Part shown: piece by piece, positions 1,456 to 46,733 of the stretch
Layout: each line of letters starts with the position of its first letter
Numbering within the stretch: position 1 is the first letter of the stretch
IMG/VR virus record: IMGVR_UViG_3300005253_001115
Location: 62,001 to 126,000 of that record
Direction: 5' to 3' (one strand)
DNA: 64,000 bases
Program-made: the position numbers and the translations under genes
Notes under the pieces: model-generated
The model's input: the letters and a program-made list of their open reading frames with translations, nothing else
What the model was told of the DNA's origin: nothing
The model's database searches: none

Positions 1456-2520
1456 ATGGCCGATCCGACAGGCAGCGTAGGCGGAACATTTGGCGCTGGA
1501 CCCGGCGAGACTCCGGGCGAGCGTATCTTCCAATCGGTTGATACGCTTGCTCGACTTGCCACTATTCAAACAGCCGTAGATCGCACACTCATTCTCGTTG
1601 AGGGCGAGCAGGGCGGTCTGCTTTATCGTATGGACAAGCAGGCAACTGTACCGGGCTCCAACGAAGTTGCAGCCCCGAACGGTGGTGTGTGGAAGCTAGT
1701 CAATCTGGGTGGTGTCCAGGGAAATACAGGCGAAACTGGCCCCGCAGGCGCTCCCACGGGCGTCACAGGAGAGACTGGCGCTTCCGGCCCCCAAGGTGTC
1801 GTAGGTTCGCAAGGTATCCAAGGTGACATAGGTACTACCGGACCCAACGGCGAGACGGGAGCCCAAGGCACCGCAGGCGTCAACGGACTCCTAGGTGAAG
1901 TTGGACCCACGGGTTCGGGCGGAACTGGCAACACTGGCAATACTGGCGTGGATGGTTTCGGTAACACAGGACACACAGGAAATACTGGACCGGCTGGCGT
2001 CCCGGGTACACCCGGAGGACCCGTTGGTTCTACAGGAGAAAGTGGACCCACCGGCCCCTTCGGAGGACCGCAGGGATCGTCTGGTGAGACTGGAGCCACA
2101 GGCATATCTGGCACAACTGGTGCCACTGGCGAACGAGGTCTCCAAGGCGTTAAGGGAAACACGGGCGAGACTGGTGCAACTGGGTTGACAGGTGTCGATG
2201 GCGACATGGGTAACACAGGTGCCCAGGGCTTCACAGGAGCAACCGGTGAGACTGGTGCAACTGGCGTTACTGGCGCAGGTGAAACAGGTGCTTCAGGTTC
2301 TACTGGAGAGACCGGACTAACTGGGTCGCAGGGTGAGCTTGGTTCAACCGGTGCTTCTGGTTCTACCGGAGAGACAGGAACGACTGGCCCGACGGGATCA
2401 GATGCTTACACGCCGGGAGACGCTTCAGATTGGATAGATGCTGATCCTACGACAATTACTCAAGCGCTTGACCGTCTAGCCGCAGCCGTAAGAGGTGGAG
2501 AGACTGGTCCAGTAGCCTAA
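1456..2520 (+). CDS. Collagen-like virion fibre protein
   Basis: GGAG SD. Long G-X-T repeat region and an N-terminal module shared with 2545, 4251 and 10926. Confidence 0.85.
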
Positions 2521-2544
2521 AGAACTGGAGACTGAGGGCCGATA

Positions 2545-4251
2545 ATGTCTCACTCGACGGGGCCATTTGCAACTGAAGAGCATGTACTAGAAGGGACGGA
2601 AACAAACTCTAGCGGAGTCGCGTCGGAGACGACAGTAGGACAGCGAATCCATGAGTTTGTTGAGACCGTTCTTGCTCTACAGCTCTTGCAGGATCAATTC
2701 GACGGACAGATTATTTCTGTTCGCGAGAACCGGACTATCTATGCGTTCGACAGCAACGCCACGTCCGGCGACGTACCTGCCGCTGTAGGCGGCTTCTGGC
2801 AAATCACAGGCATCATTGGCCCCGAGGGCGAGATTGGTCCCACAGGCCCCGCCGGGGCTCCCACTGGTGAAACCGGCGAGGTTGGCGAGATCGGCTCCAC
2901 AGGCGCTACAGGCGCTACAGGCGAAATAGGATCGGGCAACACGGGTTCTACCGGAGCTACTGGTGTTGCAGGTCCGGCTGGCGCTCCCACGGGCGTTACA
3001 GGCGAAACCGGACAGACTGGTCCCCAGGGCGACCAAGGTATCCCTGGAAACACTGGTGAGACCGGCGAGGTTGGCGCTACAGGCCCTTCCGGCGGTCCCC
3101 CGGGCGAGACTGGCGTCACAGGAAATACTGCCTCCACAGGCTCCACAGGCGATGTAGGCTCGACAGGAGCAACAGGGGAAACTGGCCCTGTTGGACCTGC
3201 TGGCGCTCCCACGGGAAACACTGGTGAGACCGGACCCGAGGGTCCGCTGGGAGAGACCGGACCCGGAGTTGCTCAGTTCGAAGGTGTGCGTGTAGAGCGT
3301 GCTATTTCGAATCTGGCTCTGGTTCAGAATACCCCAACGAACATTCCTTGGGATACTGAAGTCTACGACGAGGGCAGCGCGCAGTTCTTTCAGCCGGGCG
3401 ACCCCACTTCCGTATTCGCCATCAAGGACGACAAGTATCGCATTACCACGGGCCTACGATTCACTTCGGTTCCGGCAGGCATCCTGACTCTCGAAGTTAA
3501 GGTAAACGGCTCAGTCGTTGCTTCAGAGAAGCGGACGGCTATGCCTACTCCCGAGGTAACGGATATTAACATCTCCACAGAGGTGGACCTTACCCAAGGC
3601 GACAACGTACAGGTTACGGCCACTACGGATGCCACCGGGCAGTCTATCGAAGCAGGCACCGAGTCCTGGCTTACGGTTAGTGCTGCTGGCGGTGCTCTAG
3701 GTATCCAGGGTGAGACTGGCGAGACAGGAGCCACTGGCGCAACGGTGGGTGAGACCGGAGCCACGGGTGAGACCGGCATTACAGGCGTTGGCATCCAGGG
3801 CAACACTGGCGAGACAGGTTTGACAGGTTTGACAGGAAACACGGGCGCTACGGGTGAGACTGGACCCACCGAAACTGGCATGACGGGTGACCTAGGCGCG
3901 ACTGGCGAAACCGGACCGACAGGTTCTAGTGGAACCTCGAATCTGGTCGAAACGTGGTCCGGCTTCATCGAGGCTCCGGTATTCGGCCAAAAATACACGC
4001 TGGAGCAGTCGGTACAATTTCCGTTAACAGTCAACGAAATTCACGGCCAGACCGAGAGCGGATCTGTCAACGTTACTATTTTGAAGGATGGGGCTGCGCA
4101 AGGTCCCACGGGCGTTAGCTTCACCGCTGGAGCTACTTTCTACACTTTCTCTGGGACCACAGGTGCGACAGGCACCCGAATCCAGATCGAGGTTGACGCG
4201 GTATCTGCCGGGGAAGACTTCGGATTCACAGTTAAGACTACGAGAGACTAA
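2545..4251 (+). CDS. Collagen-like fibre protein with a C1q/TNF-like beta domain
   Basis: Two G-X-T blocks flank a beta-rich domain (IPWDTEVYD...KYRIT..LRF). C-terminal ...KTTRD module. Confidence 0.8.
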
Positions 4252-44606: not shown

Positions 44607-45358
44607 TGGCGTCCAAAGGATTACTGCTAGGTACTGTGTTTAATGCGCCTCTGTCGATCAGCTTTAATGGGGTAGACGAGGATCTGTTTAACAACACGCC
44701 GCAGACCATCGGGATAGCGAACGACTGGAGCGTTCAGGCTCTCTGTGAGCCCGCAGCGCTCACCGCGAGCGAGATGGTTGTCTTCACCATACGTGGTGCT
44801 CCAAACGAGATTGTGCTGTCTATTCTTGCCTTCGACCCCAACGATCCACTTAGAGTATGGACAAGGAACAGTTCCGGCACTACAATCAAGCGCTACGAAT
44901 TCGAAAATCATTTTACTGTGGGTGTCAAGGTGAGCATCCTCTGTACCTGGGACGGAACGGATCTCGTAACGTACATAGATGGTTCCGTGGCTACTCCAAC
45001 CACACTGGTCGATGACAACGCAGGAACCATGACCGACACGGCACGTCGAGTATCAATAAGTTCCAGAGAGGGAGAGGGTGTCCCGCAGTCATTCTTTGAG
45101 GGAAAGATCCACTCAGTTTCAGTATGGAACACTGTTCTCACACAACCCAAAGTCACAGTGTTGGAGAACTCTGGGAGACCACAAGAAATAGACAACCGCG
45201 TGAACTCGGGAGCTTATGACGCCAGTGCCAACCTCGTCCATTACTGGCGTCTTGGCCTTGACGCTTCGGACATCGGGAAGGATTCTGGCACCGGGACAGC
45301 CATTGACATCGGCGACGACGCTGTGAACATCACCTCCGACGACATCGTAATCTACTAA
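44606..45358 (+). CDS. Single LamG-like domain protein (paralog of 9006)
   Basis: IGIANDWSVQ...TWDGTDL..YIDG...SVWNTVLTQ...LVHYWRLGLD...IDIGDDAVNITSDDIVIY. Confidence 0.82.
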   Translation: MASKGLLLGTVFNAPLSISFNGVDEDLFNNTPQTIGIANDWSVQALCEPAALTASEMVVFTIRGAPNEIVLSILAFDPNDPLRVWTRNSSGTTIKRYEFENHFTVGVKVSILCTWDGTDLVTYIDGSVATPTTLVDDNAGTMTDTARRVSISSREGEGVPQSFFEGKIHSVSVWNTVLTQPKVTVLENSGRPQEIDNRVNSGAYDASANLVHYWRLGLDASDIGKDSGTGTAIDIGDDAVNITSDDIVIY

Positions 45359-45398
45359 GGATTTGACGAGAGATATTCCGACCTAAGGGAGAACTACA

Positions 45399-46733
45399 AT
45401 GGCACATGATCCTGGCTCACCGTTTGGGACAGAAGAGCATGCACTGGACCCCGCGCTAGAGGGCGGCGAAGCCGGACCTACAGGTGCGCCTGATCCTACC
45501 GGCCCCACGGCCCCTAGCCTGATACCTTTCGGCCCCACTGGAACAACAGGAGAGCAAGGTCCCACAGGTCCGGCTGGCGCTCCCACGGGCGAAACTGGAG
45601 CTACAGGTAGCATCGGCAACATCGGCAACACTGGTAATACAGGAGCCGGAGAGACGGGTGCCGCAGGACCGCAAGGTGCTTCTGGACAAACTGGTGAGAC
45701 AGGACCCGCAGGAGCCACCGACGGCAGCACAGGCCCCGCAGGTTCTACAGGAGAAACTGGAACCGCAGGAGTCCAGGGTGACCAGGGCAGCACTGGTCTT
45801 ACCGGGGTCGGGACCACAGGTTCCGTAGGCTCGCAAGGTGCCGCAGGCATCCAGGGACAAACAGGACTCACAGGTGCCAACAGCACTGTAGAGGGACCGA
45901 CAGGAACCACAGGACCGCAGGGCGAGGGAATCACAGGAAATACCGGCGCGCAAGGCGACACAGGTCTTCAGGGTCCGGCCGGAACTGGAGCCCAGGGTAA
46001 CACTGGACCTGCTGGTGTTGAGGGTGATAAGGGAAACAAGGGAAACACAGGCACCCAAGGTGAGAGTGGTCCTACTGGACCCTCTGGCGGTCCTATCGGT
46101 GCTACGGGAGACACAGGTAACACTGGAAACACAGGTGTTGGTGACGAGGGACCTGTTGGGCCTACCGGTCCCACTGGAAACGTCACTGGTGACCTTGTGC
46201 CTCACCGAGCCAACTCGTTCACCGATGAGAGGCACCTTACTGACGGGCAGTGGGCTGCTGCTGCGGGAACGTTCGGCACGCCCAGCAACACCAACCGCTA
46301 CGTTACCGAACAGGACTCCAGGGTACAGGGATCGTTTACTTACCAGGGGGCGAATGTGTGGGGCGGTGACTCTATTCCTTGGATACAAGGCACACCTGTT
46401 GTACTGTCCTGGGCGTCTGAAATAGACGACGTTGGTGACTGGTTTAGCGGTCCCGGTGCAGACCGTTTTATCGTGCCCTCTGGAGTGTCCCGTATCCGAG
46501 CTACGGCTGAACTATGGCCACAGGATGCCAGTTTTACACATGAACTTATTGTGAGGGACAACTCCGGCGGTGAGACGGTCTGGAGTCATAGTGCCGTACC
46601 AGAAGTAAGAACTTTGCTAGTTACTGGACCTGTTGCTGTGTTTGCGGGATATCAGATCTACGTCAGATCCACTCGGAACCAGACAGGTAGCACATCTATA
46701 ACCAGTAGCTTCACGATCGAGAAGGTCGCTTAG
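45399..46733 (+). CDS. Collagen-like fibre protein
   Basis: [21 protein letters not shown] leader, about 240 aa of collagen and a beta-rich C-terminus. Confidence 0.85.

Follow-up and report, generated by a model that had tools for sequence, protein, structure and literature searches.

The DNA considered here is a 64-kb window (positions 62,001 to 126,000 of IMG/VR record IMGVR_UViG_3300005253_001115) of the 266,640-bp genome of an uncultured myovirus-like jumbo phage, and it constitutes the tail-fibre, tail and replication part of that phage. Its + strand carries ten genes for collagen-like proteins dominated by Gly-X-Thr (G-X-Thr) triplets and, embedded among them at approximately 77.7 kb of the phage contig, a gene for a 938-aa protein in which a methyltransferase, a family 2 glycosyltransferase (GT2), a TPR domain and a family 9 glycosyltransferase (GT9) are fused. 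Sequence comparison and structure prediction lead us to consider it probable that this enzyme glycosylates the phage's own collagen-like fibres. The genes of the fibre array are given below in window coordinates, and proteins are named after the first position of their gene.

1456-2520, + strand: collagen-like fibre protein, 354 aa, 72 triplets (Pfam Collagen, E 1.6e-27); N-terminal module 52% identical to that of the 4251 protein.
2545-4251, + strand: collagen-like fibre protein, 568 aa, 71 triplets divided between two collagen blocks (Pfam Collagen); C-terminal module in common with the 7346 protein.
4251-7346, + strand: collagen-like fibre protein, 1031 aa, 177 triplets with 101 Thr at Y (Pfam Collagen, E 6.3e-57).
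7346-9004, + strand: fibre protein combining an N-terminal Laminin_G_3 (ConA-like lectin) domain with a G-X-Thr block of 23 triplets, Thr at 22/23 Y positions (Pfam and triplet count); its ATG overlaps the stop codon of the previous gene as TAATG.
9006-10478, + strand: two Laminin_G_3 domains without collagen (Pfam), paralogous to the lectin-like regions of the 7346 and 44606 proteins; probably a fibre tip that binds carbohydrate.
10926-13199, + strand: collagen-like tail fibre, 757 aa, with Phage Tail Collar (Pfam, E 6e-20), Collagen (E 1e-11) and Gp10_C domains.
13225-15096, + strand: collagen-like fibre protein, 623 aa, 64 triplets (Pfam); C-terminal part homologous to that of the 10926 protein.
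15107-15649, + strand: 180-aa open reading frame (ORF) between collagen and enzyme genes, no match in Pfam or NCBIfam.
15675-18491, + strand: methyltransferase-GT2-TPR-GT9 enzyme, 938 aa (Pfam, profiles and predicted fold); proposed collagen O-glycosyltransferase and glycan methyltransferase.
22372-24789, + strand: collagen-like fibre protein, 805 aa, 174 triplets with 121 Thr at Y (Pfam Collagen, E 2e-54).
24789-25358, + strand: 189-aa ORF, paralogue of the product of 26859-27431 (41% identity, E 1e-45), no family match.
25359-26858, + strand: collagen-like fibre protein, 499 aa, 87 triplets, nearly all GAT, GLT or GET, Thr at 80/87 Y positions, longest run 68 (Pfam and triplet count).
26859-27431, + strand: 190-aa ORF, paralogue of the product of 24789-25358.
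27435-28664, + strand: collagen-like fibre protein, 409 aa, 25 triplets (Pfam); N-terminus in common with the 25359 protein, C-terminal modules with the 7346 protein.
44606-45358, + strand: lectin-like (Laminin_G-type) protein, 250 aa, encoded just before the tenth collagen gene; it shares 48-50% identity with either half of the 9006 protein and has weak PHROG tail/virion matches.
45399-46733, + strand: collagen-like protein, 444 aa, 60 triplets, encoded between the tape-measure-like and prohead protease genes (Pfam and triplet count).

The initial annotation of the window had named ten collagen-like genes at these positions, and all ten were confirmed as real + strand ORFs. Every one matches the Pfam family Collagen (PF01391), with E values from 1.9e-11 to 6.3e-57 and scores of 44-190 bits against a cut-off of 27.2. 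Counted in runs of at least five, the G-X-Y triplets number 23-177 per ORF, the longest unbroken run comprising 68, and this repeat content is far above chance. In a tally of 878 triplets, Y is Thr in 61% (506 sites), and X is Ala in 24%, Pro in 14%, Glu in 14% and Ser in 10%. The proteins had also been described as acidic and poor in Lys and Arg, and the count bears this out: the 2634 residues of the repeat regions include 162 Asp+Glu and 13 Lys+Arg, giving an isoelectric point of about 4.

All four Thr codons are in use at the 506 Y sites (174/154/90/88) and the repeats are degenerate at the DNA level; Thr is therefore kept at the protein level and does not reflect a recent DNA repeat. The codon pattern indicates that selection is acting on the amino acid Thr at Y. 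Base composition and recent DNA repeats were rejected as the source of Thr at Y, since it persists over a GC range of 31-67%, all four codons are used and the DNA repeats are degenerate.

The collagen proteins are mosaics. N-terminal modules are common to the 1456, 2545, 4251 and 10926 proteins, and C-terminal modules to the 2545, 7346 and 27435 proteins, to the 22372 and 25359 proteins, and to the 10926 and 13225 proteins. The presence of Tail Collar, Gp10_C and ConA-like lectin domains identifies these proteins as tail or baseplate fibres. The ConA-like lectin (Laminin_G_3) module occurs in four copies in three proteins (9006-10478, 44606-45358 and 7346-9004), and its domain assignment suggests carbohydrate-binding tips that would pair with collagen stalks. 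A paralogous ORF of about 190 aa directly follows each of two collagen genes with homologous C-termini; the products of these ORFs (24789-25358 and 26859-27431) are possibly fibre assembly or adaptor proteins. Long antisense ORFs over the collagen genes (e.g. 25355-26887, - strand) were rejected as genes: the + strand ORFs hold non-collagen domains and abut their neighbours, and spurious antisense 'collagen' ORFs arise because the reverse complement of GGN-NNN-ACC reads as another open Gly-X-Y frame.

The repeats are short of the features that usually hold a triple helix together. Over 697 Y-Gly-X triplets, KGE or KGD occurs twice, Pro makes up 11.7% at X and 4.5% at Y, and Thr-Gly-X accounts for 67%. 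In viral collagen-like proteins KGD has been reported to make up 13% of all triplets, and Thr-containing triplets are over-represented in prokaryotic and viral collagens (PMC11923368). With so little Pro and almost no KGE or KGD the usual stabilisers are lacking, and Thr is the only established one left. Hydration networks are an accepted stabiliser of collagen, and Thr-rich bacterial collagens are common (PMC8968730). The peptide (Gly-Pro-Thr)10 is a random coil that forms a triple helix only with galactosylated Thr, and whether and when Thr is glycosylated in Thr-rich bacterial and viral collagen-like proteins was unknown according to a recent survey (PMC11923368).

The enzyme had been described as a methyltransferase-GT2-TPR-GT9 fusion embedded among the collagens, and its Pfam domains were confirmed: Methyltransf_23 at residues 67-215 (63 bits, cut-off 27), Glycos_transf_2 at 240-397 (58.8 bits, cut-off 23.3), TPR at 441-514 and Glyco_transf_9 at 700-850 (32.6 bits, cut-off 22). 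An AlphaFold (AF2) model with a mean pLDDT of 80.5 shows four domains and no membrane segment, namely a zinc ribbon and methyltransferase up to residue ~233, a GT-A fold, helical repeats at 444-611 and a GT-B fold at 623-860. The DXD-type Asp cluster of the GT2 domain (D323/D325/D326) and the nucleotide-sugar motif of the GT9 domain (Gly-x-Asp-Ser...His; G823/D825/S826/H830) are invariant across nine homologues down to 32% identity, in which residues of the S-adenosylmethionine-binding region are likewise kept. The putative catalytic or binding residues of all three enzymatic domains are conserved.

When the family profile was compared with the PDB, the GT2 part matched GmaR (E 1.4e-30), SunS (4e-26) and ThuS (3.6e-16), whereas chondroitin synthase, TagF-type and other polysaccharide GT2 enzymes reached only about 1e-10. 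GmaR is the flagellin O-GlcNAc transferase of Listeria, and SunS and ThuS are peptide glycosyltransferases. SunS and ThuS were also the top Foldseek matches of the AF2 model (5e-14). Profile and predicted fold thus place the GT2-TPR module closest to protein and peptide glycosyltransferases, not to polysaccharide synthases. The enzyme resembles the SunS-family peptide S-glycosyltransferases in fold and profile but is not a member of their equivalog (TIGR04195, 20.9 bits against 350), nor is it a member of the lipopolysaccharide (LPS) heptosyltransferase I/III equivalogs (TIGR02193/TIGR02201, 21 bits against 185); all NCBIfam matches were below threshold.

In Foldseek searches the N-terminal domain was nearest to the sugar C-methyltransferases TcaB9, KijD1 and MtmC (about 2e-11). 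The likeness to the TcaB9/KijD1 type comprises the overall fold, the N-terminal zinc-ribbon region and a profile match at E ~1e-6. Resemblance to sugar methyltransferases fits a methylated glycan. The C-terminal domain matched the GT9 enzymes 3tov (2.6e-10) and WaaC (1e-7). The TPR plus GT-B enzymes OGT and SPY were among the matches of the model too. Among deposited phage records, tblastn with the 938-aa sequence returned only partial GT9 or GT2 matches, in Caulobacter jumbo phages and metagenomic viruses.

The enzyme gene sits within a tight + strand array with the collagen genes. The gaps in its vicinity measure 10, 25 and 61 bp, and the nearest upstream collagen gene (13225-15096) is 579 bp away. 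The short gaps between genes are the sole basis on which an operon is suggested, since a promoter and terminator scan of 10000-29800 did no better than shuffled sequence (promoter-like 8 against 10.6, terminator-like 14 against 14.4).

Three related phages, with enzymes of 62-84% identity, have preserved the gene order around the enzyme. Close relatives that keep their local gene order say little, and distant homologues are more informative. On a 43-kb contig of a Mu-like myophage, a GT2-TPR-GT9 homologue with 46% identity lies in front of the terminase gene; approximately 26 kb from it, past the baseplate genes, are two fibres, one of 933 aa with 176 triplets and one of 527 aa with 95, in which Y is Thr in 92-94%. 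Other viral contigs (GC 31-54%) carry homologues of 25-33% identity, with GT2 and GT9 either fused or split into neighbouring genes, and G-X-Thr collagen genes 315-3675 bp away. Outside viruses, contigs of betaproteobacterial metagenome-assembled genomes (Casimicrobiaceae and relatives; up to 1.3 Mb) carry a full-length homologue located 114-1886 bp behind 1-3 G-X-Thr collagen genes of the same strand. In two annotated bacterial loci the flanks are ordinary cellular genes (GST, aquaporin, TauD, MMPL) that differ between the loci.

These bacterial cassettes, whose collagens are of G-X-Thr/Ala type, lie at ~7300-12832 of L090 and 224-12780 of L092 (the two annotated loci) and also in L087, L091, L097 and L102. 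The antisense Gly-X-Y frame mentioned above makes it harder to assign the strand where GC is high, as at L087 and L094. For the L012-L014 lineage, contig walking placed the fragment in a larger T4-like genome.

Co-occurrence of G-X-Thr collagens and these glycosyltransferases had been put forward as a check in the initial annotation. A collagen neighbour was defined as having at least 20 triplets, Thr in at least 40% of Y positions and a distance within 10 kb, and near-duplicate contigs were clustered into lineages. Such a neighbour was found in 10/22 lineages with GT2 and GT9 and in 4/60 single-domain lineages (odds ratio 11.7, Fisher p 1.5e-4); the distance from enzyme to collagen was often no more than 600 bp. 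A library-wide profile search then gave 2,518 cluster representatives at E <= 1e-30, from which four further representatives were picked before their context was known. One has a G-X-Thr collagen gene 636 bp downstream. The second belongs to a siphovirus-type tail module that includes a 516-aa fibre, with Thr at 39/50 Y positions, and has a separate methyltransferase gene upstream. In the third the next ORF has 11 triplets and is not Thr-rich, and the fourth lies on a 5-kb contig with no collagen. Members linked to collagens occur in every major clade of a maximum-likelihood tree of the enzyme.

Since relatives of the enzyme adjoin the same collagen type in unrelated phages and bacteria, the enzyme most likely coats the fibres with sugar. 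The collagen genes and their composition, the domain architecture, the conserved catalytic motifs, the resemblance to protein and peptide glycosyltransferases and the recurrent association with collagens are established directly; from these we infer what the substrate is, which sites and sugars are involved, in what order the steps occur and how stability is affected. The enzyme would be a cytoplasmic machine for multi-step protein glycosylation, made together with the fibres. Its central TPR domain would bind the repetitive collagen chain, and the GT2 (GT-A) domain would then move a first sugar from a nucleotide sugar onto the hydroxyl of Thr at Y, as SgtA does on BclA3. The GT9 (GT-B) domain would attach a second sugar, possibly a heptose, and the N-terminal methyltransferase would methylate a sugar, its target being the glycan or, as for its nearest structural relatives, the nucleotide-sugar donor. 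The glycan would replace the absent helix stabilisers (hydroxyproline, proline and Lys-Glu/Asp salt bridges) and give the fibres a sugar surface. The analysis covered the 64-kb window, and genes for nucleotide-sugar synthesis might sit in the remainder of the 267-kb genome. There are hints that sugar-precursor genes are also carried by some phages: the phage contig L143 has a mannose-6-phosphate isomerase/cupin-type gene (7467-8072) approximately 2 kb upstream of its enzyme homologue.

The closest parallel is SgtA of C. difficile, a GT-A plus TPR enzyme that adds O-GlcNAc to Thr of the GPT repeats in BclA3 and whose gene adjoins bclA3 (PMC7157674). BclA of the Bacillus exosporium is glycosylated as well, and the glycans of BclA are held to aid helix stability (PMC8968730). 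As in that system, the phage locus pairs a G-X-Thr collagen substrate with a GT-A plus TPR enzyme encoded beside the collagen gene; the Thr-linked O-glycan in the repeats is known for BclA3, and its phage counterpart is predicted. Unlike SgtA, the phage GT-A and TPR domains are fused with a methyltransferase and a GT9-type GT-B domain in one protein of 938 aa. The substrates also differ, being fibres assembled in the cytoplasm, not spore-surface proteins, with Ala/Glu/Leu-Thr and not Pro-Thr repeats. SgtA was likened by its published architecture only, and the sequence homology of the phage enzyme runs to GmaR and SunS. Among protein-directed enzymes, GmaR, SunS and ThuS combine GT-A with TPR, FlmG and OGT combine TPR with GT-B, and the helical repeats bind the polypeptide substrate. 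The phage enzyme has its TPR between GT-A and GT-B, so that each pairing is known separately, but in none of these five proteins are both GT folds joined to a methyltransferase, nor is any of them known to have collagen as a substrate.

Two viral systems bear on the proposal. Mimivirus modifies hydroxylysine by means of a bifunctional hydroxylase/glycosyltransferase and has a eukaryotic host. In the phage, by contrast, modification is predicted on Thr, by enzymes that are bacterial in type. Giant viruses glycosylate their collagens, and Mimivirus resembles the phage in being a large virus with several collagen-like proteins and its own glycosylating enzymes (PMC8968730; see also the review PMC9614988). 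In mycobacteriophages, phage-encoded glycosyltransferases act on the virion itself, at the C-terminal ends of its capsid and tail-tube proteins (Freeman et al. 2023, as summarised in PMC12619734). On that summary, they resemble the proposed system in being encoded by tailed phages and acting on the phage's own structural proteins in the cytoplasm, and differ in that the targets are capsid and tail-tube C-termini, not collagen repeats or fibres, and the hosts are actinobacterial. The remark of the initial annotation that it knew of no such description for a tailed phage has to be narrowed to this extent: virion glycosylation as such is known from the mycobacteriophages so summarised, and only the collagen or fibre target would be new. 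G-X-Y segments in phage fibres have themselves long been known, from prophages of E. coli O157 and other phages (PMC3368898), and in prokaryotic collagens Y is most often Thr (PMC3368898; PMC8968730). What sets this locus apart from other phage collagen fibres is the combination of ten genes in one phage, near-absent salt-bridge triplets and a dedicated glycosyltransferase among them, which the literature searched did not describe; nor did it describe a tailed phage with a collagen-directed glycosyltransferase or the four-domain enzyme family.

A number of observations weigh against glycosylation of the fibres by this enzyme. The proposal of the initial annotation, that the phage glycosylates its own G-X-Thr fibres with a methylated glycan, is favoured by the likeness to protein glycosyltransferases, the collagen adjacency and the likeness to sugar methyltransferases, but the phage is uncultured and the support for a fibre glycan is comparative throughout. 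As to whether the glycosyltransferases occur in relatives lacking collagens, the answer was mixed: 12/22 enzyme lineages, roughly half, have no G-X-Thr collagen within 10 kb, mostly on short or partial contigs. One Burkholderiaceae/Janthinobacterium clade has at most a Thr-poor collagen beside the enzyme, and several phage homologues are placed among replication or packaging genes, as seen on partial contigs. The control set of 60 lineages, from contigs matched via GT2 alone, is unmatched for genome type, and the bacterial examples form one fairly tight clade and so count as one or two independent cases. GT9 enzymes are classically heptosyltransferases of the LPS core. Finally, the glycosyltransferases of comparable phage gene clusters have been read as modifying host surface polysaccharide (PMC7029224; PMC7824862).

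These last two points lead to the alternative that survives best, although we regard it as unlikely: the enzyme would modify a host envelope glycan (LPS core, O-antigen or capsule), for instance against superinfection or the sticking of progeny to lysed cells, and would merely ride in a variable tail-fibre region. The GT9 domain does match the LPS heptosyltransferase family, with WaaC by fold, and this is the reading given to glycosyltransferases in the hypervariable tail-fibre region of pelagimyophages (PMC7029224) and to jumbo-phage glycosyltransferase clusters (PMC7824862). The score against the LPS heptosyltransferase equivalog is nevertheless far under its cut-off (21 against 185 bits), the GT2 part is 15-20 orders of magnitude nearer to protein and peptide glycosyltransferases than to polysaccharide GT2s, and the TPR domain is typical of protein-directed enzymes (SgtA, GmaR, FlmG and OGT). 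The adjacency to G-X-Thr collagens also recurs in bacterial chromosomes, outside any phage tail-fibre region.

Slightly less likely again is that the enzyme is protein-directed but targets other proteins, such as capsid or tail-tube subunits or host proteins, or has a broad specificity in which the collagens are one target or none. SgtA takes Ser as well as Thr (PMC7157674), about half of the enzyme lineages are without a nearby collagen, and the phage virion glycosylation known from the mycobacteriophage summary hits capsid and tail-tube C-termini. Set against this, the adjacency to G-X-Thr collagens is strong, recurrent and often immediate over a GC range of 31-67% and in both phage and cellular contexts, and in the collagen-less loci no other Ser/Thr-rich candidate substrate was seen beside the enzyme.

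The initial annotation had also included two smaller proteins in the glycosylation system, as GT9/methyltransferase hybrids:

52504-53631, - strand: GT9-like (heptosyltransferase-fold) protein with a small C-terminal domain, 375 aa (Pfam GT9, 33 bits; AF2 pLDDT 82.6; Foldseek).
55456-56595, - strand: paralogue of the 52504 protein, 379 aa, with borderline C-terminal methyltransferase matches (Methyltransf_11, 23.3 bits against a cut-off of 21.2).

The two are paralogues (BLASTP E 1e-16). The GT9 half of the description stands for the first, by Pfam and by fold, with WaaC, TibC and 3tov as its best Foldseek matches (E ~1e-7, TM ~0.45-0.54); TibC is a protein heptosyltransferase. It is not a member of the LPS heptosyltransferase equivalogs (35.7 bits against 170). 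The hybrid label can stand, but its methyltransferase half is weakly supported, being borderline in the second protein and a faint resemblance in the C-terminal domain of the first. Both genes are part of the replication module, where DNA polymerase, ThyX and PIF1 helicase genes surround them. Searches recovered relatives from this phage clade only, at identities as low as 37% and for the most part on short contigs. With this distribution and location nothing ties the small enzymes to the collagens, and their inclusion in the collagen glycosylation system was not upheld; they could serve glycan extension or have an unrelated role. Their setting lends some colour to the weakest alternative, that the collagens are unglycosylated and stabilised by hydration of Thr at Y alone (an accepted stabiliser in collagens, of which Thr-rich bacterial ones are common; PMC8968730), with the enzyme and its small paralogues serving nucleic-acid modification or an unrelated pathway, but this is very improbable: the 938-aa enzyme showed no similarity to known DNA glycosyltransferases in Pfam, PDB-profile, NCBIfam or Foldseek searches, the association with collagen genes would be left unexplained, and sugar-free (Gly-Pro-Thr)10 does not fold (PMC11923368), the phage collagens having even less proline.

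The window as a whole falls into two blocks. A + strand block (1-47.7 kb) carries the fibre genes, a tail sheath homologue, a tape-measure-like gene, homing endonucleases and the prohead protease, and a - strand block from 48 kb carries a PIF1-type helicase, a VWA protein, ThyX, a LAGLIDADG endonuclease and a family A DNA polymerase. Megablast of 15 kb found no close relatives among 50,697 deposited phage records, the tail sheath gave a single distant match in them by tblastn, leaving no cultured relative to transfer annotations from, and three related metagenomic contigs (78-210 kb) were identified. The sheath homologue (33001-36105, + strand) is unusually long at 1034 aa, and known sheath proteins match only its C-terminal residues ~640-1020.

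Other genes of the window deserve mention in their own right. Directly upstream of the collagen gene at 22372, a 233-aa ORF (21670-22371, + strand) matches the 2H phosphoesterase superfamily and Pfam Acb1 (anti-CBASS; 32.5 bits against a cut-off of 27); its product may be a counter-defence protein that degrades cyclic nucleotides, encoded within the fibre module. Three homing-endonuclease-type genes lie amid the tail and replication genes, namely 36514-37302 (+ strand, GIY-YIG-like), 43415-44056 (+ strand, HNH) and 58066-59409 (- strand, LAGLIDADG). The last shares 4 bp with the start of the ThyX ORF (57125-58069), perhaps as a sign of an intron or intein. The family A DNA polymerase (59611-62649, - strand, 1012 aa) has a uracil-DNA-glycosylase-superfamily domain N-terminal to its 3'-5' exonuclease domain.

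To the question of how the Thr-rich collagen-like proteins that are frequent in bacteria and viruses fold without hydroxyproline, this locus brings a candidate enzyme together with matched natural substrates. A family of homologues that keeps the pairing of enzyme and collagen in phages and bacteria makes the question of Thr glycosylation testable. More tentatively, and with less confidence than we place in the assignment of the phage enzyme itself, the methyltransferase-GT2-TPR-GT9 proteins may be a widespread, unrecognised collagen-maturation family. Phage and bacterial G-X-Thr collagens, poor in proline and free of salt bridges, might then use Thr glycosylation where animal collagen uses prolyl hydroxylation, and carriage of the enzyme by a phage might free the folding of its fibres from the host. 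On that view this would be the first case in a tailed phage of a glycosylated tail fibre and of a system that modifies collagen. If glycosylation of the fibres holds true, it would provide a one-protein tool for glycosylated recombinant collagen-like materials. It would also bear on host recognition, on fibre stability and on the annotation of glycosyltransferases in tail-fibre regions, which are now usually read as host-surface modifiers. Virion glycosylation would extend from the capsids and tail tubes of mycobacteriophages to receptor-binding fibres.

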